A stretch of 63,466 bases of DNA, counting the filler, from Syncephalis fuscata S228 (lineage: Eukaryota > Fungi > Zoopagomycota), in the NCBI GenBank assembly GCA_025786725.1. It is 6 parts of 6 records of this genome, joined end to end, with 100 filler letters (N's around TTAATTAATTAA, not from the genome) between each part and the next. Parts side by side here need not be neighbours in the genome. Positions count along the whole stretch, not along the records: positions 13,583 to 32,977 come from JAHLTZ010000175.1; 5 more parts are not named here. One strand, 5' to 3'. The notes under the pieces were generated by a model. It was given only the letters and a program-made list of their open reading frames with translations. It was not told the origin of the DNA and did not search any database. The position numbers and the translations under genes were made by a program. Shown one piece after another: positions 13,583 to 33,077 of the stretch. The first letter of the stretch is position 1; each line of letters begins with the position of its first letter.

Positions 13583-13878
13583 GACCAGCGAGTCGACAAC
13601 AACAACAACAACGACTGATGTAAAACCACCACACCGAGGTCGTTCCCGTCAACAGTCACAGCAACAAACGGCCAATTCACGTGAACGAGTCGCCGTAATT
13701 TAGATGTTATTTTCCTTTTGTTTATCATTTTTCTTGTTTGCTAGTCGCCTGAATATTATGCCCGTTTATTTGCCTATTTGTTTCACATGTGAATTGTTGC
13801 ACAATTTGATTAAAACAATGGTCGTTAAATGTATTATCATTGTAATAATTATACTACTAATAGTTACTAAATGAAAGG

Positions 13879-15477
13879 TTAATTCAGTTCAGGTATAAAA
13901 CTTGTAATGAGTGCTGTCTCCTTATTCAGCAATAGCATGTGGCCCAATGCAAATGTACGATGTTTTACCATTACTATTGCATATGGATAAACGTCCACGT
14001 TGCCTGTTACAGCATCGATAACACAATAATGGCCAACTCTATAATTGTAACCAATGATTTTTGTATCAATAAGATGTTGAAAGTAACACAGCCTAACCGT
14101 TAAGATTTTTAAATGGATTTCATGCAAAATCTCTCCATTTAATAGTGACATAACAACTAGCGATGAGCAATTGAGCGACCAGAACACAACCAAATTCTGT
14201 GCTGAAATTAAAATCAGTTTTTCAAAATCATTTGTTGGATAGTTGCATTCAAAGACGACTCCTTTGTTTAATGAGACTACTCGAATGTAGCGTTGATAAT
14301 TATCTATATTGACATTCGATGTCCCCTCGGGTAAGTGAGCGTTGCAGTGAACTAATATGCGATCGCGGTCAATTGAATAAAATTCTGAAACCCAGAGTTT
14401 TGTAAGATTGGAGACAGTTATGTAATCTGATGCAATTGTAGCCATTCGCATCGTATCATCTCCAATTATCTCCAAATTTGTATCAGGTATCAATTGTATG
14501 CGGATTATCTTATAATCGAGTCTGAACTCGCTTTTGCAGTATTGTACAAAAATTGTCTTATTATTACTCGTCGAATGTATCCTATACTTATAGGAGTAGT
14601 CGATATTTGGAAAAATAATGGATGGAGGTTCGTGCAATTGTGTTGTTGAACCAATGTTATAGATTAGTCGAGTATAGTAAGTGGATTGTAAAGTGTTGGA
14701 TGGAGCAATCCTCTGTGAGCTGGAAACCAACAAAGATGCGCCTATAATTCTACCGTCCCATTTACCATTAATATCGATAGAGTGTAGTAGTTGGCAACTA
14801 TTTGCGTCCCATACTTGAAGCACATCAAAGAGCCCTTCAAAGTATTCTAAACATACAATTACACGCATGCCTTCATCAATGGCATCTACTTGTTGTTGGC
14901 ATTGATAAAATGCTATATTTTTAATAAATTTTAAACGGTTTTCATCCAATTTTAGTAGATGATTTTTGGCTATATTATTTGTCGAAAGTTTAATCAAATC
15001 AACAGAAGGATTATATCGATTTGCTATTGCAATCCATCCAGGATAGCTCACAGTCATCGTGCTACGGCCAATACCTAACTTTAGTAATTTATCTACCGTA
15101 GTAGATTTTATATAGAATGTAGATGTTGGCTTGTTATTCTGCCAATTTAAACCCATACTGGCACGTTGTCTATATCGCTGAAACCAAGTAACCTTTGATG
15201 TAGCTCTATTCTCCATGTCGGTTGCTGCTTCAGTTATTCTTGGTTCTTGCTTCAATTGCCATTGTAACCAGTCGATATCAGTATCGATATCACGAGGGAA
15301 ATGCTGTTGATACATTCTGCGCCAAAGATTATCGCAACCGATAATAGAATTGTACAATAATTTACAAGTGCGCGCCAATGCTACTGTGGCACTTAATTCG
15401 CTAAATTGTGATATATAATGAACTATATCAATAACTAGCCATATTCTTGGCAGTATGTCGTTATTCTGTGTGGACAT
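13879..15477 (-). CDS. Intronless F-box-like protein with beta-rich C-terminal region
   Basis: LPRIWLVIDIVHYI...VALARTCKLLYNSII...LWRRMYQQHF is F-box-like; WFQRYRQR...NW is shared with the 46157-47262 protein; first ATG at 15477. Confidence 0.7.
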   Translation of the reverse strand: MSTQNNDILPRIWLVIDIVHYISQFSELSATVALARTCKLLYNSIIGCDNLWRRMYQQHFPRDIDTDIDWLQWQLKQEPRITEAATDMENRATSKVTWFQRYRQRASMGLNWQNNKPTSTFYIKSTTVDKLLKLGIGRSTMTVSYPGWIAIANRYNPSVDLIKLSTNNIAKNHLLKLDENRLKFIKNIAFYQCQQQVDAIDEGMRVIVCLEYFEGLFDVLQVWDANSCQLLHSIDINGKWDGRIIGASLLVSSSQRIAPSNTLQSTYYTRLIYNIGSTTQLHEPPSIIFPNIDYSYKYRIHSTSNNKTIFVQYCKSEFRLDYKIIRIQLIPDTNLEIIGDDTMRMATIASDYITVSNLTKLWVSEFYSIDRDRILVHCNAHLPEGTSNVNIDNYQRYIRVVSLNKGVVFECNYPTNDFEKLILISAQNLVVFWSLNCSSLVVMSLLNGEILHEIHLKILTVRLCYFQHLIDTKIIGYNYRVGHYCVIDAVTGNVDVYPYAIVMVKHRTFALGHMLLLNKETALITSFIPELN

Positions 15478-15766
15478 GATGGAAATAGAAACAAGTATGA
15501 AAATTGTTTGGTTGTAGTAAAAAACCCCCTGAATTAAATAGAATGACGTATCGATCAGTAGATAGAACATGACTAAATATTTTAGTTCTAACAATTACTT
15601 TTTGTAAAATAATTAAACGTTTATATTGTTATCGATTAATCATTCCACAGATAATACAATTGACGATGTATTAAAGGTATTATATTATTGCAAAGTGCAC
15701 CTAATCTTTCGCTTTATTACTCTTTTTGCGACAAATAATCAGCAGCTTATTTTATTGCCGCTTCAC

Positions 15767-17099
15767 CTATTGTTGCACAGCCTTGGCTGTGTAGAGACGT
15801 GTAATATTGGCACCGCTTGTCGTTTCCAATTGTTTGGCATGCGCGTTCATTTGATGCGCTGTTAGCATTTGTTCAAAACGAGATGGTTCCGGCAACACTT
15901 TTGGTAGATCCTCAGGTTCTTCAGGCAACAATGCCATACCAGCCGCGGCACGCTCTTTGTTTTCTGCTTTGCGTTTCTGCACTGCTTGTTGAATACGCTG
16001 TAAGTCGCGTTGAGCACCACGTAACCAGTAGAGCCATTGCCCTTGTTCGTGACGCCAGTCATCAATACCTTCCGTCAACGACTCTACCGAGTGTTCAATA
16101 TGGCCACCATCAGCTAGTTCTAGTCGGCTTAAATCCGACTCTATTGGACGCTCTGTAGTATCCAGTTCATCCAACAATACTTCAGCCAATGTCGAGTTGC
16201 ACACCTTAACGGGTAGTTCATCAAAAATCTCCTGAGAGTTAATGTTCAATTTGCGCATACTATCGAGTAAATAGTTGTAAGCAAATCATATAAAAATAAG
16301 CCACATCAACCATCACTTACTTGGCGGTAGTAAAGTCGCGTGTACGGAATGCTCGCATGAAGTTCTTGCTTAAACGATAGGCACGAATGTTGAAATTGCC
16401 ATTATCCGTTTTTGAAACATCTACCAATTAATTACTCATTAATTAACTGCTTACATCTATTGTTCTGATATCACTCAACATATCCAATATTATACATACC
16501 ATGAATAAGCACAACACATTTCTCGCCCAACTTCTTCTGGTAATCAAACTGTGTCTCGATCAATGACTGAGTAATAAACGAGCCATAACGAGCCGATTGG
16601 TACCAGCCTACAGTATTATGATCGGCATTGACATCGCGTAATGAGCGCAACATATCCATTTGATATTGTGTGACTATAAAATAAATTGGAATCAGCCATT
16701 TGTTCAGTACAGTCAACCAACTGTTCTACGTACTGCTACTGCCATCGTCATGCTTGCCCGATTGAGGAAGTGGGAAGCAGTTGGTGATTTCAAGACAACC
16801 ATCGACATCCAAACCAAGTAGCTGACCCGTCGCTGTGCCGTTATGGCGTTCACGGCAGTGTTTGATGATCTTCATCACAACCTATAGCGTTTAGATCTAA
16901 ACGTCAGCTGGTATATACTAAAATATCTTGTATTATAATCATCTAAAGGCTTATTTAAAGCCGCTTATACTTGCTTGTATTTATTGTTATAACTTACCAT
17001 ACCATCCAATTGAACACTTTCCAATACAACCTGAGCATCTTGCTCGAGGTGTTCGGGCTTCATACTTGAAGGATCGGCAAGTTCGCTTTTCTTCACCAT
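15767..17099 (-). CDS. EIF3H: Translation initiation factor eIF3 subunit H, 5 exons
   Basis: [65 protein letters not shown]. Confidence 0.9.
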
Positions 17100-17296
17100 A
17101 TTGCTATTGTTAATACGATTAACCGTGCAGTACCAATCAACAACAACAATAATAATAAACGGTCAAAGCCAAAATGCAAAGAGGTGGAGAAGGAAAAAGC
17201 TGATTAAAAAAATGGCAGTTTTCAATGTTGCAAGCTTCGTTAATTCAATCTTCATTAATTCTATATTCCTCACATTGACGGTAAACATTGTTATCT

Positions 17297-18699
17297 ATGA
17301 CGGTGTTCAAGCTATTTGGTATGTCGTTATAAGGATAAATAACAACCTATTAGGATAGGAAAATAGCTATACTAATAATATTATACGTAGATATTGGTGC
17401 CAACCTGGTAGACCCTATGTTTCGGGGTATTTATCGTGGTAGACGGGTACATGCAGGTAATGACATACACTATATATTAATACTAGCTATTAGAACTTAA
17501 TAAAACAACGATAGATGATTTTAAACTGGTATTACAACGTGCAAAGGATGCTGGCGTCAATCAAATGCTGATAACCGGCGGTTCTTTGAATGAATCAATA
17601 GAAGCATTGGAGTTGGCACGCGAAGAAGGTAATTAAACAGTATGAACAGTTAAACTATCCTATAATAATAGCAATATTTAATTCTAGATGGACTCTATAG
17701 TACGGTGGGCTGTCACCCAACACGTTGTAAGGAATTTGAAAAGTATAAAGAGGGATCAGATGCATATCTTGCAGCACTTTTAAAGTTGGCCGAACAAGGT
17801 AAAACAGAAGGCAAAGCACTAGCCATTGGTGAATGTGGACTTGATTATGACCGATTACACTTCTGTCCCAAGGATGTTCAGTTAAAGTGAGATTGATAGA
17901 TTAATAAATAATAATAATGACTACTTATTAAATGGTATAGATATTTTGAATGGCAATTTGATCTGGCAGAAAAGACGCAGTTGCCAATGTTTTTGCATAT
18001 GCGTGCTGCTTCTACTGATTTTATAGATATCCTTTACTGATACTTATAATGAGTTGTTTATCACTACAAGTGTATTCTTAATTGAAATGATATACAGCTT
18101 ATTAAGCGACATCGAAGCCGTTTTACTGAAGGTGTTGTCCATTCATTTACGGGTACAATGGAGGAAATGGAAGCATGTGTAGAACAAGAATTATTTATTG
18201 GACTTAATGGATGGTATGTAAATATTAAATACAGATTGTAAACACAAATACTAAATAATATTTTATGTAGTTCATTAAAAACAGAAGATAATTTGACAGT
18301 GGTTGCCGCTGTACCAGAGGACCGCATTATGCTTGAAACGGGCAAGTCACATCATTGATGGTCAATGAAGTTTTTTAATTAGTAAATAATAGATGCACCA
18401 TGGTGTGAGACTCGGTCAACTCATGCGGGACATCGATATCTTGCTGGACTTACATGGCCAGAAGCAAAGAAGAAAGAAAGATTTGAAATGGGATATTTAG
18501 TGAAATCGCGTAATGAGCCTAATGCTATGCGGTAAGTTAATAATAAGTATAATCATGGTAATTATTAATTAATGGTAATTATAGTCAAGTATTACGTATT
18601 GTGGCCAGTGTACGCAATGTATCTGAAGAACATTTGGCAGAAGTGGTCTATCGTAATACATGTCGTGTATTTAAACCATCCACTGATGCAGATCATTAA
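17297..18699 (+). CDS. TATDN1: TatD-family DNase (TATDN1-like), 9 exons
   Basis: [63 protein letters not shown]; one AT-AC and one GC-AG intron. Confidence 0.93.
18027..18095 (+). other. U12-type AT-AC spliceosomal intron
   Basis: 5' ATATCCTTT, branch-like TTCTTAAT at 18075-18082, 3' TATAC; removal gives [23 protein letters not shown]. Confidence 0.9.
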
Positions 18700-18910
18700 T
18701 CTGTCGCATATTAATAAATACTTGTTGATGGATATAAATGTCGGTAAATATCGGGATAGATATAATGAAATCTCAGACTAAAAGCGTCAATTTTCTTTTT
18801 TTTCTTGTTACTTTCTTCGTCTTCGTTCCTTACGCACAATAAGACTTGGTAAGTATGCTGTAATGTTGGTATTGTGAGATGTGAATACTTATTATATGAA
18901 TCTAAAGAAC

Positions 18911-19928
18911 ATGTCGCCGCCACCGTCTGGTAAACAACGCGAAAGCGGCACTGCCCGTTTATTGGGCTCTGGCACGTCAGGCATTCTAGAGCTGCTTATT
19001 TTCCATCCAGTAGACACGCTCGCCAAACGACTAATGTCTAATCAAACTAAAGTAAGCTAAAGCAGATAGTTTAAACAGTAACTTATATAGTTATATAGCT
19101 TTTCGGTGCTGGCGGTAGCGGCATGGCAGGTCTTAATAAAGTTATCTTTAAGGTAAGTTAAAATGGCTGTAATAACACGTAGTTGTATTAATTATAATTT
19201 AATAGGATGCAGCTGCACTTCCAATGACCCAACGTTATTTCTCACTTTTCCCCGGTCTTGGATTTGCTGCAGGATATAAGATCTCGCAGCGTATCTATAA
19301 ATTTGGCGGTCAACCTTATGTCAGCGACTACTTGGCCACCCATTACGGTAATGAATTCCGTAGTACATTTGGTGAACGTAACGGTAAAACAATGATGCAC
19401 GCCACGGCCGGTAGTATCATTGGTATTGGTGAAGTATTATTGTTGCCATTGGACGTGTTGAAGATTAAGCGTCAAACAAATCCTGAAGCATTCCGTGGAC
19501 GAAGCACCTTTAGAATCTTTGCCGATGAAGGATTCGGTCTATATCGTGGTGGTATGTGGACGGCAGCGCGTAATGCACCCGGTAGTTTCTCGTTGTTTGG
19601 TGGTTCGGCATTTGTTAAAGAGTATGTATTTGGACTGGAGGATTTCTCCAAGGCAACGTTCTTCCAAAACTTTTGTGCATCTATTGGTGGTGCTGTAGCA
19701 TCGATCACCGTGTCGGCACCACTTGATGTTGTTAAAACACGTATCCAAAATCGTAATTTTGATTCGCCTGAAAGCGGTATGAAGATTGTGCGAGATATGA
19801 TTCGAAAGGAAGGTATGGGCGCCTTTTTCAAGGGTCTTGTGCCAAAGGTGTTGGTCGTAGGACCTAAATTAATATTTAGTTTCACCATAGCGCAGGCGCT
19901 CATACCATTTTATGGCAAATATGTCTAA
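18911..19928 (+). CDS. GGC1: Mitochondrial GTP/GDP carrier, 3 exons
   Basis: ARLLGSGTSGILELLIFHPVDTLAKRLMSN, YKISQRIYKFGGQP, PLDVLKIKRQ, PLDVVKTRIQ. Confidence 0.92.
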
Positions 19929-20743
19929 ACAAATAAATAAATGATTGCTTGGTATTTTGTTATGGATATTAGGATTAAGTGATGATATATACTTACAGAA
20001 TGATGAATAATAGCATGATTGTAATATATTTATTATTATAAAATTGAATAGGTTGGAGAAAGAAGTAGCTGTTTACTCGTATGTTGTTTCAATAAAAATG
20101 TATCTGGTATATCAAATTACGTATTCAATTATTGTATTAATATTTATTTTAGTAATGTTATTTTTAAATTACTGCTTCTAAACTTTGCAATAATTCTGCC
20201 GTACACTAACTTATAGCCAAAGAGATGATAGTAATGTCATAAATTGTAGTAAAAGTATATCATTTATATTAATAAAGATGTGCTATATTGAAAAAAATTA
20301 AAGTTAGTTTACATCTTTGGCTTTAGTTGTAAATTAATGATTTGTCTAATACATTTTATTATATTTTAATATCAACTAGCGACTTGTAAATCAATATACC
20401 TAAATAATCAATAATAGTACTAGATTGTATGTTAGTTATTGTTATTACTATGATATTAAATAGAATGTCCGACAACATCAACGTTTTTCAATCCCACTAT
20501 TATATCGATAATATAGTCAGAGTATCAATAAATTGAACATAACGTGACGATAGCCGTGCCTTGTTGCTTCCAATCCAAATGGATAAGAAACTAGCATAAT
20601 TATTCTAGCATAGGGTACTTCAGCGGTTCGTTCACGGGTAAAAAACGATGCTGTACACACAAACTATGCAGATGATGCAGATAAATAGCGTATCTACTTA
20701 CCAATAAATACAGATAAATAAACAAACATCGATTAAAGTTAAA

Positions 20744-20780
20744 TGGATGAATGAATGAATAGATGGATGGATGGATGGAT
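20744..20780. repeat. (TGGA/TGAA)n microsatellite; another (GGAT)n at 34912-34941
   Basis: Directly visible tetranucleotide runs. Confidence 0.8.
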
Positions 20781-20980
20781 AAATAAAGGTAATGTACAAA
20801 AGTATAATGTTTGTGATGTTTGTATAAAATTGAATAATCACAGATCTAGTAGGCACAGTTTACCAGTCATTTTGCACTTGTCATATTTTACAGTCTAGTA
20901 ATTAACACATTCATGCATTATTTGATAGTCAATAAAATATAATGAGGCCATTTAATTTATAGTATATATATGATACTTTA

Positions 20981-21571
20981 TTATCGCAGACATGTACCAT
21001 TTTTTGCATGTCCATAATCATTAAATTTTGGATCAAGCATTCGATCAATCAAAAATATTGCATTGTTATTAGAACGAATGTATTTAGTGATTCTTGCACA
21101 ATTTACATATGTAAAGCCATTCTTTACATGAAGACAAAGTGGCTTATCCGCATAGCTATAAACATCATAGCATCCAGTTGAAGGTGGAGTTTTAGGAAGA
21201 CGATCACGAGAGGACATATAATGTGCTGCTTGTTCACCGGTTAAACTGCCATAAAAAGATGTTTTTTCTGGTATAAAGCTGACACTATCATGAGTATTTA
21301 GTGGATAAGAGATAGGGGAAGTAGATTTGACCGCGTTCTTAACGGTATAAAAAAAAAGGTCAGTACCATAATGTGTGGTTGCTCCTATTGCTACTCCTAA
21401 AGAAAAACTATCATACATCCATGAATCTAGAAAAACTGAACTGTCTCGTTTTAAAAGAGATTGCTTTGCATCGTATGTTTCAGTAGCACTATTTCCATGA
21501 ATATACTCAGTAGGAACAGCTATCACTACTGATGCCAAAGCAAGTGCAATAAGTATAATGCAAAATAGCAT
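20981..21571 (-). CDS. Secreted fasciclin (FAS1)-like protein, 196 aa
   Basis: Signal peptide, KR site; SVSFIPEKTSF resembles the FAS1 H1 motif and SNNNAIFLIDRML the H2 motif. Confidence 0.6.
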   Translation of the reverse strand: MLFCIILIALALASVVIAVPTEYIHGNSATETYDAKQSLLKRDSSVFLDSWMYDSFSLGVAIGATTHYGTDLFFYTVKNAVKSTSPISYPLNTHDSVSFIPEKTSFYGSLTGEQAAHYMSSRDRLPKTPPSTGCYDVYSYADKPLCLHVKNGFTYVNCARITKYIRSNNNAIFLIDRMLDPKFNDYGHAKNGTCLR

Positions 21572-21859
21572 GCTTGAAATGATGGAGTGCTATCACAATA
21601 AATGCTATGCTTGATATAAACAGAATGCAGTTGATGATGGATAGTATAGAAATGCAGATAATGCTTGAAAATACAGAAATGCTAAACAAGAAGGATGCAA
21701 TGAAATAAATGCAAAGTGAAGAGTATATTGCCGACTTTGTATCATTTATTTGTAGCTTTATACAAAGGATTGCACTCAATAATAACTGCCCAACTATTGG
21801 TCAAAGTCCATATTAAGATTGGCAAAATACGTCATTGCCTATTTATTGTGCCTTTGCTC

Positions 21860-24800
21860 CTTTGATTGTTGCTATTCAAATAAACATTAAATATACTTTT
21901 TACATTAGTTTATAGCACTAACTGTATATTTATGCAGTTACTTATAAACAGTCTAGCAGATGGTTTTAATCTACAGCTATTTAGTCGAAAGGCTAAGATA
22001 GTTTCATCATGCGATATATTGTTGAACATTATACTTGTGTAACCATCAGGCTGAATGTAAATCACATGCTTCATCATCCATTTACAGACCTTCTTTGTTC
22101 TCGTATGCACACTTGCAAAATACGTGAACTGTAACATGCGGTACAACCACATGAACATGAGTTGTTGCCATTCCCAGCAGGGTAGACCTTGAATACCACA
22201 TGAACACAAATAACATTTATTAGTGCAGTATAGCATGATGTATTCATTCAATCTGTTACTCATTCTATTACTTTGTATTTGCGCCCAACACTCGTACTAT
22301 TTGTAACTTTGTTTACTGGAGCTAGCAGGTCTGCTCTAATCTGCCATAATCAATCCATATCACCAACTATTTAACTTACTTTTTAAGCAACATGCGTTTC
22401 CTAAATGCTTCACATGAACCAACTTCACTTGTAATATCGCGTTTCCTATTTTTAGTTATAGGAATTGCTGCATTAGCATTTTTTACTGCTAATCAATTGA
22501 GTTATGTAATTGAATCAGAGGATATTTATCAAACTGAGTATCATACTGAACCACTTACTGTACCAACTATACTATTTCGAACAATAGTAGCGCCTGATTT
22601 AGTTATTCTCTATAATGTTACGATTGACGGAATTTCATATGTGTCATATAAGGAAAGCGATGTAATTGATTTTATTAATTGGAGTGAAAATGTGATTGAT
22701 TCAAGTTATCCAATTCAAGATTGGCGGCTATCGTATGACATTTATAGGTCTCGTTCACTAAACAACTCAGTACTTTCTATGTTTATGTTAAAGCCTAATA
22801 TTAATGCTACATTTGTTCCTAATGTTCGAAAAACTCTTAACAGACCTGATATACGCAAACGTCCCATTAAGGAAATTAATCTAAATTTTACAATGAAATT
22901 TCCAGATAATAAAAAGCTTGCTAGGCAAGCTCGTAATTATCAAACTGATATTTTTTTTATCAGTAATCCTGCTTTAATTAATCCAAAAAACTTTAGTGAA
23001 CTATTTGATCTGGCAACAATCGATTCCGGGTCTCGTTTTACTGTAAAAAGTGGGTCCAAAACCAAGATTGACTTTATTCAAAGCTATAAAGAAGGAAAAG
23101 ATCAAAATGAAACCATTTACGATTTCAAGTTTTATGAACAGCGGGGAACAGATCCAACAGTAGTCGAGTTTACCCTTGTTCCTCGCAACAAGCCATCTAA
23201 CAAGAAATATGGATTTATAGTAAAGAAAGAGATTGCACGACGTCCCGTTAGTTGGTTTCAAGCACTAGCATCAATTGGTGGTGCTATATCACTATTTATT
23301 GTTATTTTCACTATACTTTTTGGTCAACGCCGTCTCAAACCTTGGGGTATCATTCAAAGGTATTTTGTGCGCAACAAAATGCTTAGCCTTTTACCACAGT
23401 CTATGGTCAGCATTAAATCACATTATGATCCCGGATTTAATCAAGAATCGGTTACCGACATGACATTTCTACATATGCCAAATCCAGAACAACGTGGCAC
23501 AGCATCCTGGTTGCCAAAAACTATTCATAATCCAAATCAACACAAGTCATCGAGCAATGATGTATCTCGGTGTATACCATCTATATTAATTAATAACGAA
23601 CAACAAAACTTATCTGCCATTCATCCTCGTGCTGATGAAATCCATGAGCTTAAGGCAATGATGACAGCGCAGAAAGCACAAATGCAAGAGCAGAAAGTAC
23701 AAATGAAGGCACAAATGGAGGCACAAATGGAAGCGCAGACTGTATTTCAACTGAAGCAACTTACAATAATGTCAAATCGACTTGCGACACTTGAAGACGA
23801 TACAAGTACAAGCAACAGCAATATACTGCTAGATAAACCGACCCCAAATAGCACATGTCTACCGAATACTTCAATGGCCCACCATAGTAAATCGTTTGCA
23901 TCTACATCAAGTGTATTGCCGCTCGAAGCTCGGGTATCAAACCTTGAATCTTTTCAGCACCGATTGGGAACATTTTATTTGTCATCTGATTTGTTTAAAG
24001 ATACTTCGTTCAGTTAATATTTACAATAAATTATATGATTATATGTACCGTAATAGCTATGTATTCAGAGCAAAAAAACTATGTTTCATTATTAAAATCA
24101 TAAGCATTGATTGCTATATATATTATACTATTACTATTTGATGGCGATGTAGTTACTAGACAGTAATATTACTAAACTTATATAAACATTGTTACAAATC
24201 TGATTTAAAAATTGCAATTTAGATGACCATACAGCGTTTTATTTCTTTGTCATTTTATAAAGCTAGTCTTCAATGTGCGTTAATACTTATCTCAACACTC
24301 AGAATACAATTTGTTGGTTGACTGAAATTGATTTACTAATAAACTTATTTTTTGGACATTAGTTATCACAGTTCAACTATAATAAACCGAGTTGCTTGTA
24401 TAGCACTAATAAGAAAATAAATAAAAATAAAACTAGTAGTATATAATAAACAAAGCTAACAATATAAATAAATGCTTTGTAATATTTTCTCATTAACTCA
24501 AAACACATCAAATAATAGCCAATTAATTTCAAAGCAATCAAAAAATGCTGTATTCGAATGTTTATAATATTGTTTATGATTTATTTAAAAAAAATATGTA
24601 ACGCGCATAGATATTGAACGCAACAAGATGAATAACAATTATTTTGCAATGATTGTATGTATTATAGCCAACTGCTGCATTATTTTCTAGATGTCACAAT
24701 ATCTGTATTACTATGCTAATTACAAAAGGAATGGCATATGGTGGAATTGATACAGAGAGACCGTCACATGAAAGTAATCTAAAAGCTATGCTAGTCATAT

Positions 24801-25577
24801 GAAGGCTTGAGCTTTTAGTATTGGCATTAAATAAATTTTAATCAAAATAAAGACAATGTGCAAGAAAGTGTGTTGTCAATGATGTCTATAGAAATTAATT
24901 ACTGAAATGTAGTGTGCATGCTTTACCTGTCATTGTAACTTTGCCACTTTGATTGTTGCTATTCAAATAAACATTAAATATACTTGTTACTTTAATTTAC
25001 ATCACTAACTGTATATTTGTGCAGTTACTTATAAACAGTCTAGCAGATGGTTTTAATCTACAGCCATTTAATCGAAAGGCTAAGATAGTTTCATCATGCG
25101 ATATATTGTTGAACATTATACTTGTGTAACCATCAGGTTGAATGTAAATCACATGCTTCATCATCCATTTACAGACCTTCTTTGTTCTCGTATGTACACT
25201 TGCAAAATACGTGAGTTGTAACATGCGGTACAACCACATGAACATGAGTTGTTGCCATTCCCAGCAGGGTAGACCTTGAATACCACATGAACACAAATAA
25301 CATTTATTAGTGCAGTATAGCATGATGTATTCATTCAATCTGTTACTCATTCTATTACTTTGTATTTGCGCCCAACACTCGTACTATTTGTAACTTTGTT
25401 TACTGGAGCTAGCAGGTCTGCTCTAATCCGTCATAGTCAATCCATATCACCAACTATTTAACTTACTTTTTAAGCAACATGCATTTCCTAAATCCCCTGC
25501 ATGAACCAACTTCACTTGTAATATCGCGTTTTTTATTTTTAGTAATAGGAATTGCTGCATTAGCATTTTTTATTATT
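21860..25577 (+). repeat. Tandem segmental duplication: 21860-22490 vs 24947-25577 (offset 3087 bp)
   Basis: About 530 bp upstream plus the first ~100 coding bp are nearly identical, with no net indel. Confidence 0.9.
22392..24017 (+). CDS. Intronless 2TM protein with large extracellular loop, 541 aa
   Basis: TM1 near the N-terminus, N-glycosylation-site-rich loop, TM2 SIGGAISLFIVIFTILFG, PWGIIQRY, coiled-coil-like C-terminal tail. Confidence 0.8.
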   Translation: MRFLNASHEPTSLVISRFLFLVIGIAALAFFTANQLSYVIESEDIYQTEYHTEPLTVPTILFRTIVAPDLVILYNVTIDGISYVSYKESDVIDFINWSENVIDSSYPIQDWRLSYDIYRSRSLNNSVLSMFMLKPNINATFVPNVRKTLNRPDIRKRPIKEINLNFTMKFPDNKKLARQARNYQTDIFFISNPALINPKNFSELFDLATIDSGSRFTVKSGSKTKIDFIQSYKEGKDQNETIYDFKFYEQRGTDPTVVEFTLVPRNKPSNKKYGFIVKKEIARRPVSWFQALASIGGAISLFIVIFTILFGQRRLKPWGIIQRYFVRNKMLSLLPQSMVSIKSHYDPGFNQESVTDMTFLHMPNPEQRGTASWLPKTIHNPNQHKSSSNDVSRCIPSILINNEQQNLSAIHPRADEIHELKAMMTAQKAQMQEQKVQMKAQMEAQMEAQTVFQLKQLTIMSNRLATLEDDTSTSNSNILLDKPTPNSTCLPNTSMAHHSKSFASTSSVLPLEARVSNLESFQHRLGTFYLSSDLFKDTSFS

Positions 25578-27020
25578 AATCAAATTATCGACGTACTTCG
25601 ACTGAAGGAGATTTATCAAATTGAGTATGATGTTGAGCCACTTGCTGTACCATCTATATTATTTCGAACAATACTAACACCTAATTCAGCTATTCTATAT
25701 ACTGTTACGATTGACAGAACTAAATATTGGATACGTAGAGAAAGTAATTTGACTGATGTTATGAACTGGGGAGAAAATGTAACTGACTCAAGTTACCCAA
25801 TTCAAGATTGGCAATTATCCGATGAGTATTATAGGTCTCGTTCACTAAACAATTCAAAGCTTTCTATGATTATGTTAAAACCCAATATTAGTGCTGTATT
25901 TGTTCCTAAGGCCCATAATTCTTTAAATAGACTTCACAAGGATAAACGCCCTACTAATGAAATTAATATAAAAGTTATAATTGACTTTCCAGATAATCAA
26001 TCGTTCGCTACTAAGCAATCTCGTAGTTTTCAAACTGATATATTTATAATTAATAATCCCGATTTACTTAACTCACCAAATCACAAGAAACCATTCGATC
26101 TAGATACGATTAATCCTGATAATCGCTTTACTGCAAAAAGTGGAACCAATAATAAGTTTAATTTTCTCAAAACCTATAAAGAAGAAAATAAGCAGACTAA
26201 ACCAATTTACGATTTTAAGTTTCATGAACGACCAGGCGTAGATCCAGCAGCAATTGAACTCAACATTGTTCCTCGCAATGAACCATCTGAAGATAACAGT
26301 GGTTTTATAGTAAAAAAAGAAATTGCACGACATCCCGTTAGTTGGTTCCAAGCAGTTGGTGCTATTGGTGGTGCTATATCACTATTTATTGCTATTTTCA
26401 CCTTATTTTTTGGTCAAAGTCGTCTCCGGCCATGGGGAATCATTCAACGATACATTATGCGCAACAAGATGCTTAGCCTTTTACCACAGTCTATGGTCAG
26501 CATTAAATCATATTACAATCCCGAATTTAATCACGGACCAGCTGCTGATATGAAGGGTTTAAATAAGACAAACCCAGAACCATACAAGACAGCATTCCGG
26601 TCATCAAAGTCTACTGTCAACACATATCGACAAGATCCGCCAAATAATGACATATCTCAACGTATACCATCCATACTTATTAATGGCGAGCAGCCATACT
26701 CATCCACTGCTGATGCTCATGCCAGTGAAATAAGTAAGCTCAAGACAATGATAGCAGCACAAATGAAGCAAGCTACAGTAATGTCAGATCAGCTTGCAAT
26801 GCTTGAAAGTAATCTAAGCACAAACAACAGTGCTATACTGCTAGATAAATCGACCCTGGATAATACATGTCTATCAAATACATCAATGGCTCAGTATAGT
26901 GAACCATTTGTATCTTCACGTAGTGCAGCAGCATTTGAGACTCGCTTATCAAATATCGAAGCTTTCCAGTCTCGATTGGGAACATTCTACTTGTCATCTG
27001 ATCTGTTTAAAGATGATTAG
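25479..27020 (+). CDS. Paralogous 2TM protein, 513 aa
   Basis: Collinear similarity to 22392-24017 over its full length. Confidence 0.8.
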   Translation: MHFLNPLHEPTSLVISRFLFLVIGIAALAFFIINQIIDVLRLKEIYQIEYDVEPLAVPSILFRTILTPNSAILYTVTIDRTKYWIRRESNLTDVMNWGENVTDSSYPIQDWQLSDEYYRSRSLNNSKLSMIMLKPNISAVFVPKAHNSLNRLHKDKRPTNEINIKVIIDFPDNQSFATKQSRSFQTDIFIINNPDLLNSPNHKKPFDLDTINPDNRFTAKSGTNNKFNFLKTYKEENKQTKPIYDFKFHERPGVDPAAIELNIVPRNEPSEDNSGFIVKKEIARHPVSWFQAVGAIGGAISLFIAIFTLFFGQSRLRPWGIIQRYIMRNKMLSLLPQSMVSIKSYYNPEFNHGPAADMKGLNKTNPEPYKTAFRSSKSTVNTYRQDPPNNDISQRIPSILINGEQPYSSTADAHASEISKLKTMIAAQMKQATVMSDQLAMLESNLSTNNSAILLDKSTLDNTCLSNTSMAQYSEPFVSSRSAAAFETRLSNIEAFQSRLGTFYLSSDLFKDD

Positions 27021-27265
27021 TCTAATTAATATCTATAATAACTTATATAATTATATTTGCCATAATAAATGTGTATTCACAAATCAAAAAATAATATATA
27101 AACTGAACATGTATCCAATTAATTACATTCTATTACCAATATTTATTAACGACTTGGAATTGAATAAAACAATTGGTACTTTAACATATCAACACATTGA
27201 ATAAACGAAAATGTAATGCTTTGTTAGGAATAGCTAAAACAATACAGTAAAATAAAACTAATAGC

Positions 27266-29978
27266 TTAATCTCCATCGGATATATCAAGTTCCGCCGTCA
27301 TATACTGAAACGCTAATTCTTGTACAGCACCATAGCTGTTGTGTCGACGTATACCCTGTTCTATTGTTCGTCTATCGATCATACTACGATGAGGTCGTTG
27401 TCCGTTAGGAGAACCTACGGTAGAGTAGGATTGGTCGTTTCGTTGTGGTAAATCGCGTCGTGTGGCATCGAAACGGCGCAAGCGTAGTCGGTAGATGATC
27501 TCATCGATCGTCAATTCAATCTGACAATGGTTACGTATAATGGCAATTTCTATAGTAATTTACAGTTAAGATATCAATCGTATGTACAAATAGCGTATTA
27601 GTGTAAAATTCTATGTATAAAAAGGATACTGGGCCAAGTGGCACGTTCACCGCGTAGCATCGACTCTGTCATCATTTCATCTGATGGATTAACCAGTAAG
27701 TGAGGAAATTGAGACCAGGCGATATCTGGAATAATGGTAATATCTCCTTCGTATCGTTGAGATAGAATAGCTCGTAATTTACAAGTGGTATTTGGCATAA
27801 CACCTAAATCATCCAACTAACAACTCAATGGTATTTAGTAATATATAATATATAATATAGAGTGTGTATAGTTTACCTGTGCTAAACGATGTTGCAATTC
27901 CTGAACCGCTAAATTCATCATCCAAGAACCCGCCCGATGTAAAGGTGACTCCGAAATAGACTTGCGTAAAAATGGAATAACATGTGGATTGACTATAAAT
28001 ATTGTAAGAAATAGACTAATCTACGGTACTCCTATCTATTCTATTCTTACCTTGACAAACAATAAAGTGATTTATATTGAACAGTTCAGATAGCTTGTTC
28101 ATCGGTAAATCACTAATAAAATCATAGTTAATTAATAATATATATTAAATTATTCAATTAAATACCTACGTTTCTACTGAACCATCAATCCAACGATGGC
28201 CTAAATATACTCGTGTCAACATAACTGCTATTAGTGTCAATTAAACATACCAGCCATATTCCACGGGACAATCTTGCCTGTCTGGTCCTTTACCATAAGT
28301 CGAGTGGATTGAAACACTAAGGGAACTGCACACGATGCCATACTATTCGTTCATTACATATTTACATGTATAATATTAGTATATATACTAGCTATAACTA
28401 TCCCAACTTACACAGCAGACCAAATGACTACATTGGGCGTAGTAAGATAGTTCAGCAATTGTGGCATTTCATGATTTGTCGATGAACTAACGGCAATATT
28501 AAGAATACGACGGGTTCTATTAAATGCTTCCTATTATTAAATAACATTATAACTTAGCCGTTACTACTGCTAATACTAGTCCATGATTACAATACCTGAA
28601 ATGTCAAATCACCTAGAATGTTATATAATGATGTCTTCATAGTAGATTTATCATAAAAATTCCCTACTCATATTCCATAAATATCTAAATATATTATAAA
28701 CAGTATTGCTTATACTTACCATGCTTAAGGAATCGAGATATTTTATCATAGATACCATCATCGCTAAATGAATCAAAGAATTTCTAATAATGACATTATT
28801 AACAATCCTACTATTATAGTCATCAAATCTATTACTTACAAGCTCTACTGCTCCTGGTTGTAAAAGTTGATCTACTTCTTCATCAGTATGTGTACAAATA
28901 ATGGATGCAATAATAGAACCACTTGATGTACCAGATATAACTCGTGGCAATAAATTACACTCCTTTAAACAACGAATAACACCTATATGTGTTAGGCCTA
29001 TATTCATCATACCACTCATTAATATATATATATATATATATAGATATCATCATCCTCTACTTATATAAAGACTTACCAAATGTTGCTCCACCACTTAATA
29101 ATAAAGCCGTACGACCATAAGCATGTCGAACATTAATGAAAAAGTCGTATCGTGCATCCTCAGATGTCCATTCATCGTAATCGACATCAGAAAGAAAGTT
29201 CAACTGTAAAACTACTTCCTCAATAAATTCTTCAATAAGCTTCTTCGTACCAATACGTGTATGTGCATAGTTCTAATCAATGACATCATCATTATTAAAT
29301 AGTTATTAATAATAAGCCATTTAACTTACCCGTGGATTACCCATATCAGCAAAATGACGTGATAATGACGATCGAAGTAAGAATATCATAGCTGATATAT
29401 TATTTGATTCTCTGGCAGCCCGTAACTGCTCAATACGTAACTTCAATATTCCATAGTCATAGTCGGAAGAGACAGGATTTTGTTTCCACGTATTTTTACC
29501 TATTATTATAATAAACATGTTAGATCGTTCTATCAACAACAACTATATATTACCATCTTGTTGATCAAGTATCAATGCAGCTGATGCCCATTGTTCGTAA
29601 TTGGTGGCTACACTCATCAAATGCTCGTAATAATCCCTTCTATCATGTGGATTTAATATAGCAAAATACTTTTCCTAATTATTATAATACACAATTAATT
29701 AATTAAAATGTTAATTAATTAACCAACTAACTATTAGCTACCTTTAACCATTGTGCAGACTGATAACCAATTTCATGTCTTTTATCTAATAACTGATATA
29801 GCCACCCAGTCTTAGATTTATCTTCAGCGGTGAATTCTTTAGGTTCTTCAATAAAATCCTCAACTGAAGAAGTCTTTGTTGTTTGTGTTGTTTCCGAGTC
29901 CGAGTCTTCCAGTAGCTCATCTTCAAACGCCATCCAAACAGGACGATCGGTGTGGTTGAGCACTGGAGGAGGAGACAT
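27266..29978 (-). CDS. Patatin-like triacylglycerol lipase (Tgl4/Tgl5/SDP1 family), ~13 exons
   Basis: [65 protein letters not shown]. Confidence 0.9.
27550..27629 (-). other. U12-type GT-AG spliceosomal intron
   Basis: 5' GTATCCTTT, branch ATCTTAAC (27565-27572) ~15 nt before AG; removal gives [19 protein letters not shown]. Confidence 0.88.
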
Positions 29979-30235
29979 ATAAACGAGAGCAGCTATAGCA
30001 GTAGGTAGTTTGGTATCAGTATTTAGTAGTTATAAACGAATTGACTGTAAAAGTAGAGTAGATGACAAGGTAAGTGGCGGAATTGAATGAAAGTAAAAGT
30101 GTTGTTCAGTCGGAGAATGGCAGTCTCCACAAAAACAACAATGTTTATTGGTACTTTCTATTTTAGTCTAGTTTATTGATTTGCCTTCCTACTCTTGTTT
30201 TTAGTTGCATATACAGGTATCAGTTATTGGTTGAA

Positions 30236-32200
30236 ATGCATGCAAGTAGTATTAGCCATGATGCATGAATCTATATGTATATACGATTAACAGTATATTT
30301 AAATATAGATTGCTATAGAGGGATGTGGACACGGTGACCTCGATGCTATTTACGCCGAGATTCAGCGGCGCGAAGAGGCACAGGGCTGCCGTGTTGACTT
30401 GCTGCTTATATGCGGTGATTTCCAGGTAAGTACTACGCTTAACACGATAGTAGCTAATAGTATTTAGGCGGTGCGTAACTTTGAAGACTTGGCAACTATG
30501 GCTTGTCCTGTAAGATTCCGTAAATTGGGCGATTTTCACCGTTATTATTCTGGTGAAAAGGTGGCACCTATTTTAACACTATTTATTGGTGGCAATCACG
30601 AAGCGAGTAATCACTTACAAGAACTGTAAGTTATTAATGGTTTAAAAAGATTTACTAATAAGTCTAGATATTATGGTGGATGGGTCTGTCCCAATATCTA
30701 CTATTTAGGTGCAGCAGGAGTTGTTCAATACGGTGGATTGCGTATTGGTGGTATTAGCGGTATTTACAAGTCTCATGACTATACTAAAGGTAGCGCTGTT
30801 TAATAGCGATTATGACTATAGATATACTAATAGGAATACAGGTCGTTTTGAAGAACCTCCATACAACAAGAGTGATGAACGAAGTATCTATCATATTCGT
30901 AGTTATGATATTGAACGATTATCAATGGTAGATACCAAGTGTAATAGCAATGATACATTATATTGATGTACACACTGGTTAATAGATAAGAGAACGACTT
31001 CATGTAATTATGTCTCATGATTGGCCGTGTGGTATTGAACAATACGGTAATTTGAATCGTCTTTTATCACAAAAACCATTTTTACGTAAAGATGTAAGTT
31101 TGTATTAAATCATTTATATTTATTAATTAATATGAGCGACTATTAGATATCTACTAAATCTTTGGGATCACCGAAGAGCATGGATTTATTGCATCGTGTT
31201 CAACCACTTTATTGGTTTGCTGCTCATCTTCATGCTTACTTTAAAGCAACAGTTCAACATCCAGTTACCGCAGTTGAAACAGTTGACAAGCAACAAGAAC
31301 TACTTAATATTGGTAATCCAGAAGCTATTTCACTAGGCGATCTAGACGATGATAGTAGTGGTAATGATGACAAGGACGATGGTATTCAATTTGAAGGAGC
31401 ACCTCAAGTTGATGTACTTGCTGTTGTTGAACAGAATCCAGATCAAATAGCTTTAGATATAAGCGAAGAAGAAGAAGAAGAAGAAGATGATGATGATGAA
31501 GAAGAGGATAGTAATAATGAACAGAATGAACAGAATGAAAGGTCAATTGGCGATATGTTTATAGATACAGTTGGTGTAAACGCATCAGTATTACCAAAAT
31601 TCACAGTAACCAATTTCCTAGCGTTAAGTAAACGACAATCTAAATTTGAATTTCTTGAGGTATGTTTATTAAATAATAGTAATAATAATAATAATAGTAA
31701 AATTGAATATATTGTTATATCTATAGATTATAGAAATTACTGATGAATTGAATGAAGCACCATCTACATTTTGTTATGATCTTGAATGGTTGGCTATTTT
31801 ACGGGCAACACGTCCCTATCTATCATTACGTTATCGCCAATCAAGTCTACCCTGTAATGATGCAATTTACCGGTAATATTATATACAATGATTGTATTTA
31901 CACTATTTATTAACTAGCAATACGAATAGTGAAATTGATAAGGAGCGTAAATGGATAGCAGCCAATGTCACTGATTTACAAATCCCACACAATTTTACGA
32001 TGACCGTACAGCCACCTACGCCTCAAGAAGCGAGTGGACCTACACGCACAAATGTAGAAACACCACGTAGGTTAACATGTTACTGACCCACTACCTACTA
32101 ATGACTATAATAACTATAATAACTATTAGGATTTACCCGCAATCCACAAACTACCAACTTTTGTCAAATGTTAGGTATTGCCGAACCAACTTGGCAATAA
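30236..32200 (+). CDS. DBR1: RNA lariat debranching enzyme, ~10 exons
   Basis: [66 protein letters not shown]; first intron GC-AG (30242-30308). Confidence 0.93.
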
Positions 32201-32355
32201 ATAATAAATAACATTACAATGGCTATTAATGATATAATAGAATGTCAATCTGTATTTATTCTTATACTATAACAATGTATAGAGGGGGTAATTGTAATAG
32301 TAGTCGTTGATGATTCAGTAGTGGCTATTACCATTAGATAACGAGACTTAGTGAA

Positions 32356-32731
32356 TTAGAAACGATCGCGTGAATAGCTATAACAATAACAGAGGCAAGG
32401 GCAATCAATAATGCATGCATTAGTATGGTGTCACACACACTATTATAGCGGCATGTAGTACATGGTATATAGTACACGCACATATACATCCACGTGCATA
32501 CACCTACCTTTTGGCAAATTCTTGGTTAACGGCAAACATCTTGGTGTTTGTATCTTGCGTGACATGGAGCCATGGGTATGGGTTATTATGGCGATCCCAA
32601 ACGACTTCAGTACCGCGAGCTAGACGGGTTACATACCAGGCAGCACCACCCACGGCAACACCCAATACACCAACAATAGGCAATACTTCAACGCGATACC
32701 AGTTTTTCATAAAGCTTTGACGGAACGACAT
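32356..32731 (-). CDS. NDUFA4/B12D-like small mitochondrial protein, 2 coding exons
   Basis: EVLPIVGVLGVAVGGAAWYVTRLARGTEVVWDRHNNPYPW. Confidence 0.8.
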
Positions 32732-33077
32732 ATTGGATAGCTGTAAAATGGATGCGATAGATAATAGATGAGACGAGACAAGTAAGTAGAAATGGTAAGT
32801 AACGTTAAAGGTAATAAATAATATCGATAGTACGTTAGATGAGTATATATATATATTCTTAATACTATCGGAGATAAGTAACACCAATATCGCCTACTTA
32901 CTGAAACTATGAGATTTACCCAAACAATAAAAGTGAGTGAACTATTGTTGTAATAGAAGAAAGATACCGAGTGGTGGNNNNNNNNNNNNNNNNNNNNNNN
33001 NNNNNNNNNNNNNNNNNNNNNTTAATTAATTAANNNNNNNNNNNNNNNNNNNNNNNNNNNNNNNNNNNNNNNNNNNN

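Follow-up and report, generated by a model that had tools for sequence, protein, structure and literature searches.

The TATDN1-type TatD gene of the zoopagalean mycoparasite Syncephalis fuscata very probably contains a genuine U12-dependent AT-AC intron, located on the plus strand at positions 18027-18095 of the window (the whole stretch of DNA that was analysed, 63,466 nt). The intron is 69 nt long, and its boundaries are given both by the sequence and by a transcript contig that joins position 18026 to position 18096. It thus represents a transcript-backed U12 intron in the Zoopagales; in the searchable literature we found no paper on U12 introns in Syncephalis or the Zoopagales, and none tying TATDN1 to minor introns.

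The TatD coding region spans positions 17297-18699 (+). It comprises nine exons, delimited by comparing contig joints with the sequence, which add up to 930 nt, i.e., 309 codons and a stop codon (ATG at 17297, TAA at 18697-18699). Searches for families and homologues used single exons as queries. The Pfam profile TatD_DNase (PF01026) matches five of the six exons scanned, with exon 4 scoring 34.9 bits (cut-off 27), and exons 3, 5, 6 and 9 are collinear on that profile (15-50, 111-136, 141-176 and 224-253, respectively). Three TatD exons were compared with the deposited S. fuscata protein P0348 (BDF19DRAFT_451576, 309 aa) and are 95-100% identical to it; this protein contains the PF01026 domain and shares 56% identity with a "TatD DNase" from Mortierellaceae. 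Exon 5 (17941-18026, +), which ends in ...GAT TTT ATA G, is identical to P0348 residues 135-162 (28/28), and exon 6 (18096-18213, +), which starts with AG CTT ATT AAG and holds the GVVHSFTG motif, is identical to residues 164-201 (38/38).

If the intron is retained, the TatD frame ATG CGT GCT GCT TCT ACT GAT TTT ATA G runs into ATATCCTTTAC and is closed by an in-frame TGA at 18038-18040 (+). The original prediction had pointed to this stop and to the lack of a GT donor from where the conserved sequence ends up to the TGA; both are found in the sequence, in which the conserved part ends at 18017. It had also proposed that removal of 69 nt restores continuity up to GVVHSFTG. Upon excision of 18027-18095 the sequence reads GAT TTT ATA G/AG CTT ATT AAG (the slash marks the splice junction), with a phase 1 junction in a GAG (Glu) codon; the frame is then open, and the two flanking exons adjoin in the TatD_DNase profile (111-136 and 141-176).

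To assign the intron to the U12 AT-AC class we considered a /[AG]TATCCTT donor placed at the exon end and a TCCTTAAC-like branch site located about 10-20 nt from the 3' splice site. The 5' splice site ATATCCTTT (18027-18035, +) agrees with the U12-type donor consensus at 9/9 positions. The branch-site motif TTCTTAAT (18075-18082, +) is the same as TCCTTAAC at six of its eight positions, both mismatches being C to T. It ends 13 nt before the intron end, and its two A's lie 14-15 nt from 18095, in keeping with the distance of about 14 nt that had been predicted. These last 13 nt consist of TGAAATGATAT followed by the terminal AC (18094-18095, +; upstream context ...GATATAC), which is placed by the sequence as well as by the contig joint, and they include no pyrimidine tract. 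The 3' tail that follows the branch motif reads TGAAATGATATAC; the branch-site distance and the absence of a polypyrimidine tract fit the U12 class. U2-type AT-AC introns, which are rare and removed by the major spliceosome, have an ATAAGT-like donor and a pyrimidine tract ahead of the AC; here the donor is ATATCC and the tract is absent. Judged from their sequence, the signals at 18027-18095 match the U12 type and not the U2 type. The RTATCCTT 8-mer alone is not found in the window beyond chance (two occurrences vs 1.94 expected); the non-random part is the conjunction of the donor, the spaced branch motif, the termini and the frame.

Evidence for splicing comes from the single public run that includes this locus (X1), labelled "RNA?" and stored as assembled contigs, the library type of which was guessed. 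Over positions 15600-21500, the contigs of this run leave out 13 short segments, which belong to three neighbouring genes. As 11 of these 13 segments end in GT..AG on either strand, the contigs can be taken as spliced transcripts. The TatD contig (record 3 of the run, 1061 nt) skips exactly the 69 nt predicted, with AT..AC termini, one ambiguous base and the joint 18026/18096; the junction TTTATAG/AGCTTATT anticipated from the sequence is the same joint. From the TatD gene this contig also drops six introns of the GT-AG type and one of the GC-AG type. The latter (18342-18392, +; 51 nt, GCAAGT...AATAG) belongs to a variant of the major-spliceosome class; its joint, 18340/18392, has one ambiguous base and prints GG..TA, and shifting it one base to the right gives GC..AG. 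Eight exon pieces and a 219-nt terminal piece sum to exactly 1061 nt, so there is no insert at any of the contig joints. It is a single assembled contig from an allelic copy, and contigs are silent on splicing efficiency or retention.

The allelic copy is located on a different contig, C279 (283.5 kb), which also holds the annotated TatD locus encoding P0348. The segment C279:19400-21400 is a copy, 98.8% identical, of window positions 17200-18800. The seven exonic differences listed for the TatD transcript contig correspond to the C279 letters, and hence the RNA contig comes from the C279 copy, not from the window copy. The donor, the branch motif and the termini are identical in both copies, and a single SNP lies within the intron (18037, C>T). 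The window contig itself, C85 (19.4 kb, positions 13583-32977), aligns with C279:1-24878 in two blocks of 98.9 and 95.8% identity, which have opposite relative orientation and are about 11 kb apart in C279 vs about 6.5 kb in the window. C85 is either an alternative haplotype, a duplication or an assembly variant. Several other matches to the U12 pattern described below also occur as near-identical pairs, one in a short contig and one in a long contig, and the assembly seems to hold haplotigs or recent duplications.

A working U11/U12/U4atac/U6atac spliceosome had been proposed for this organism, together with a covariance search for the four snRNAs. We searched the whole 29.4-Mb assembly for snRNAs, with the Rfam gathering scores as cut-offs, and for protein domains. 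Two of the snRNAs were recovered above their cut-offs, a U11 candidate at C112:215199-215380 (47.5 bits vs 39) and a U6atac candidate at C315:4451-4610 (37.8 bits vs 33). A U12 candidate at C157:67826-67997 scores below its cut-off (34.6 bits, E 4e-4, vs 53), aligns across the whole model and carries the branch-site-pairing element AUGAGUAAGGA. At its 5' end the U11 candidate reads AAAAAGGG, which can pair with the donor ATATCCTTT, and it has an AAUUUUU Sm site; the U6atac candidate contains a AAGGAGAGA box that is also able to pair with that donor. With the U12 candidate, the two C to T departures of TTCTTAAT result in two G-U wobbles, and the motif otherwise pairs as TCCTTAAC does. All three candidates have intact pairing motifs and keep Sm-like sites. 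The protein searches covered PDCD7, the SNRNP25-type ubiquitin-like domain (UBL) and CENATAC; the 65K, 35K, 20K, 31K and 48K proteins were left out because their Pfam domains are not specific. PDCD7/59K was found on C46 (29.2 bits vs a cut-off of 27) and the SNRNP25-type UBL (PF18036) on C24 (38.1 bits vs 22.8). CCDC84/CENATAC (PF14968) gave no match in the assembly, and neither did the controls of that search. Of the proposed minor spliceosome, the assembly thus shows U11, U6atac, the U12 candidate and two di-snRNP components, whereas U4atac was not detected.

The U4atac model (RF00618) gave nothing at E <= 0.001 on the whole assembly, for which 50 of about 800 first-look candidates were scored. 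As the genome scan thus scores only a fraction of those candidates, we consider U4atac a gap rather than an absence, and we infer that this snRNA is present and escaped detection. Patterns were also derived from the U6atac stems, the pairing segments of the C315 candidate being GGGCAAGGACGGG (U4atac 5' end) and GUUGGCG (stem I). The pattern CGTCCTT-N35-65-GCCAAC yielded 14 matches vs six for the control, none of them with a K-turn, and CGTCCTT-N8-35-AATGA-N12-42-GYYAAY yielded six vs seven. The only RF00618 match at E <= 10 (C309:130080-130157, 21 bits) was rejected, as it has no complement to the U6atac stems. A stretch at C350:525798-525860, CGTCCTTTTGCAG...GAATGAG, resembles the 5' part of human U4atac; both this stretch and its twin at C87:6094-6156 lie in a frame that stays open for more than 80 codons, have no Rfam match at E <= 10 and were discarded as coding exon. 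This look-alike shows how short motifs can mislead in the calling of snRNAs.

With the components identified, removal of the intron would proceed as follows. The U11/U12 di-snRNP would read the donor ATATCCTTT via the U11 5' end AAAAAGGG, and the branch site TTCTTAAT via the U12 element GUAAGGA, so that the branch adenosine, 14-15 nt from the 3' end, is bulged out. Through AAGGAGAGA, U6atac would then take the place of U11 at the donor, the intron would be cut at A/T...A/C, and ATA G would be joined to AG CTT to give GAG (Glu). The signals, the junction and the machinery genes point to excision of 18027-18095 by the minor spliceosome.

The intron does not appear to be an isolated case. The pattern RTATCCTT-N25-55-YCTTAAY has 77 matches in the 29.4-Mb assembly vs 11 for a mirror-image control, i.e., a seven-fold excess. 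To estimate abundance we used 73 fetched matches and two in the window, leaving out two twin sites on C279; upon removal of near-identical twins, 69 unique sites were retained. In 49 of the 69, a fitting terminus (AC after AT, AG after GT) lies 5-16 nt past the motif and the reading frame continues across the junction, the criterion being that the flanks, 45 nt on either side, remain open once the candidate intron is removed. The pattern being narrow, 49 is a floor; judging from the mirrored control, about 10 AT-type matches are due to chance. The candidate introns at these 49 sites are 53-83 nt long. AT-AC outnumbers GT-AG among them, 33 to 16, whereas GT-AG minor introns are the majority in most species (PMC10639083).

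The window includes a second U12-like candidate, in this case of the GT-AG subtype, which was recognized from its sequence at 27550-27629 on the minus strand (80 nt; donor GTATCCTTT, TCTTAAC, 13 nt, AG). The gene that contains it encodes a patatin-like lipase, with the Patatin domain at 28654-29019, and the candidate joins different frames, ...GERATWP to (K)...; no Pfam or NCBIfam profile spans its junction. Its twin is located at C279:3798-3862.

A comparison of the intron position in TATDN1 orthologues, which the original prediction had suggested, places introns of both types at the same aligned codon, after DF[IVMY]. Rhizophagus irregularis (locus L006; GCA_001593125.1, LLXH01002056.1) has an AT-AC U12 intron there in phase 1, ATG G/ATATCCTTTT...TACCTTAAT...AATAC/AT TTG. 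It resembles that of S. fuscata in codon position, phase, donor (ATATCCTTT), branch-to-AC spacing (about 15 nt) and length (about 75 nt), although Rhizophagus (Glomeromycotina) and S. fuscata (Zoopagales) belong to different phylum-level lineages. The junction codon is GAT (D) in Rhizophagus and GAG (E) in S. fuscata, and the Rhizophagus branch site, CCTTAAT, is nearer to the consensus than TCTTAAT of S. fuscata. A phase 1 intron at the corresponding codon is also present in the sea urchin Strongylocentrotus purpuratus and the oomycete Phytophthora ramorum, but in both it is a GT-AG intron with a GTTAGT or GTGGGT donor, of the major-spliceosome type, unlike the U12 intron of S. fuscata. The chytrid Borealophlyctis has a GT-AG intron 2 nt downstream; Rhizopus arrhizus, Entomortierella, Dispira and the plant Mercurialis have no intron at this position. 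Being common to Rhizophagus, the sea urchin and the oomycete, the intron position is old. As conversion is assumed to go from minor to major (PMC10639083), the fungal AT-AC copies would keep the ancestral type; from these sequences, the sea urchin and oomycete copies have probably been converted. With a U12 intron in two fungal phyla and a U2 intron in sea urchin and oomycete, this position is useful for studies on minor-to-major conversion.

The deposited protein raises the question of whether the intron has other boundaries. Residue 163 of P0348, at the junction, is D (DFI-D-LIK), vs the E (GAG) that results from the transcript contig and AT-AC splicing. The DNA of its own contig, C279, is the same as that of the window at both intron ends and gives GAG with AT-AC boundaries, and a D requires a 69-nt intron at 18029-18097 with AT..AG termini. 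Taken at face value, P0348 would speak for a non-canonical intron removed by the major spliceosome, namely AT-AG at 18029-18097, with the exon junction ATAGATCTT instead of the ATAGAGCTT produced by AT-AC splicing; GA-AG at 18026-18097 would be another option. D is also the junction residue in Rhizophagus, sea urchin and Dispira. The Rhizophagus D, however, comes from G/AT with AT-AC boundaries, and neither AT-AG nor GA-AG are major-spliceosome termini. Moreover, since only one base is ambiguous at the joint 18026/18096, a cut 2 nt to the right mismatches the transcript contig, and both alternative boundaries leave a 9/9 U12 donor and a correctly spaced branch motif without explanation. We therefore consider such boundaries highly improbable, and the deposited model appears, from the sequence, to misplace both intron boundaries by 2 nt (AT-AG). 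It had been anticipated that predictors restricted to GT-AG introns would mis-annotate this gene: the public model does remove a 69-nt intron, yet with boundaries apparently 2 nt off and one residue changed, D for E. Pipelines that annotate genomes of early-diverging fungi should permit AT-AC introns.

It might also be argued that the 69 nt are not an intron, and that a pseudogene, a frameshift or an error of assembly accounts for the stop at 18038, given that C85 is a short contig nearly duplicating a segment of C279 in another arrangement. This is contradicted by the spliced contig, which removes exactly these 69 nt, and by the nine exons, which form an intact 309-codon frame matching P0348 and have the same structure in the C279 copy; we regard this possibility as barely credible. 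Another proposal would accept the U12-like signals and assume that the lineage has lost a working minor spliceosome, the intron being removed by a major or hybrid route. The undetected U4atac, the U12 score below the gathering threshold and the missing match for CENATAC/CCDC84, in a search whose controls also had none, are in its favour. On the other hand, U11, U6atac and the U12 candidate keep their pairing motifs and Sm-like sites, PDCD7 and the SNRNP25 UBL are present, and about 50 or more introns have strict U12 signals, seven-fold over the control. Such signals would not persist without selection by the machinery, which counts against its loss, and the major spliceosome is not known to use ATATCC donors. 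Loss of the minor spliceosome is thus very unlikely, and a U12-dependent AT-AC intron is the reading that we retain.

Minor introns and their snRNAs have been described since 2006-2008 in Rhizopus, Phycomyces and chytrids (Batrachochytrium) (PMC2396436). In a survey of more than 3000 genomes, Rhizophagus was reported to have 205 minor introns and Basidiobolus, which belongs to the Zoopagomycota, 249; no convincing ones were reported for Dikarya (PMC10639083). Minor splicing is accordingly documented in zygomycetes, chytrids, Glomeromycotina and Zoopagomycota (PMC2396436, PMC10639083), and the premise that Dikarya lack it while some early-diverging fungi have it agrees with both studies. The S. 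fuscata introns resemble those of Rhizopus, Phycomyces, Batrachochytrium, Rhizophagus and Basidiobolus in their signals and in the kind of snRNA set that accompanies them. The overall picture is unchanged, since survival of minor splicing in non-Dikarya fungi was already established; what is added is the persistence of the minor spliceosome in the Zoopagales with dozens of target introns, the AT-AC excess, a U4atac that was not found in the searches described and a conserved U12/U2 position. A more comprehensive scenario, to which we give somewhat less than an even chance, is that S. fuscata retains minor introns in considerable number (at least about 50 by the narrow pattern, probably more than 100), among which AT-AC exceeds GT-AG by about 2:1, that its U4atac is too divergent for the Rfam model, and that the TATDN1 intron was of the U12 type before the opisthokonts and was converted independently in animals and oomycetes.

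Some features of the genes surrounding TatD were also recorded. A mitochondrial-carrier exon in the neighbourhood shows 92% identity to Syncephalis pseudoplumigaleata. The neighbouring gene at 15767-17110 (-) has four CT..AC contig joints, which correspond to GT-AG introns on the minus strand, and a depth about 10 times that of TatD. Further along the window, two single-exon paralogues of 541 and 513 aa are arranged in tandem at 22392-24017 and 25479-27020 (+); their N-termini read M(R/H)FLN..HEPTSLVISRFLFLVIGIAALAFF, a second hydrophobic segment is present in each, and C279:1-2811 matches the first of them at 82%.
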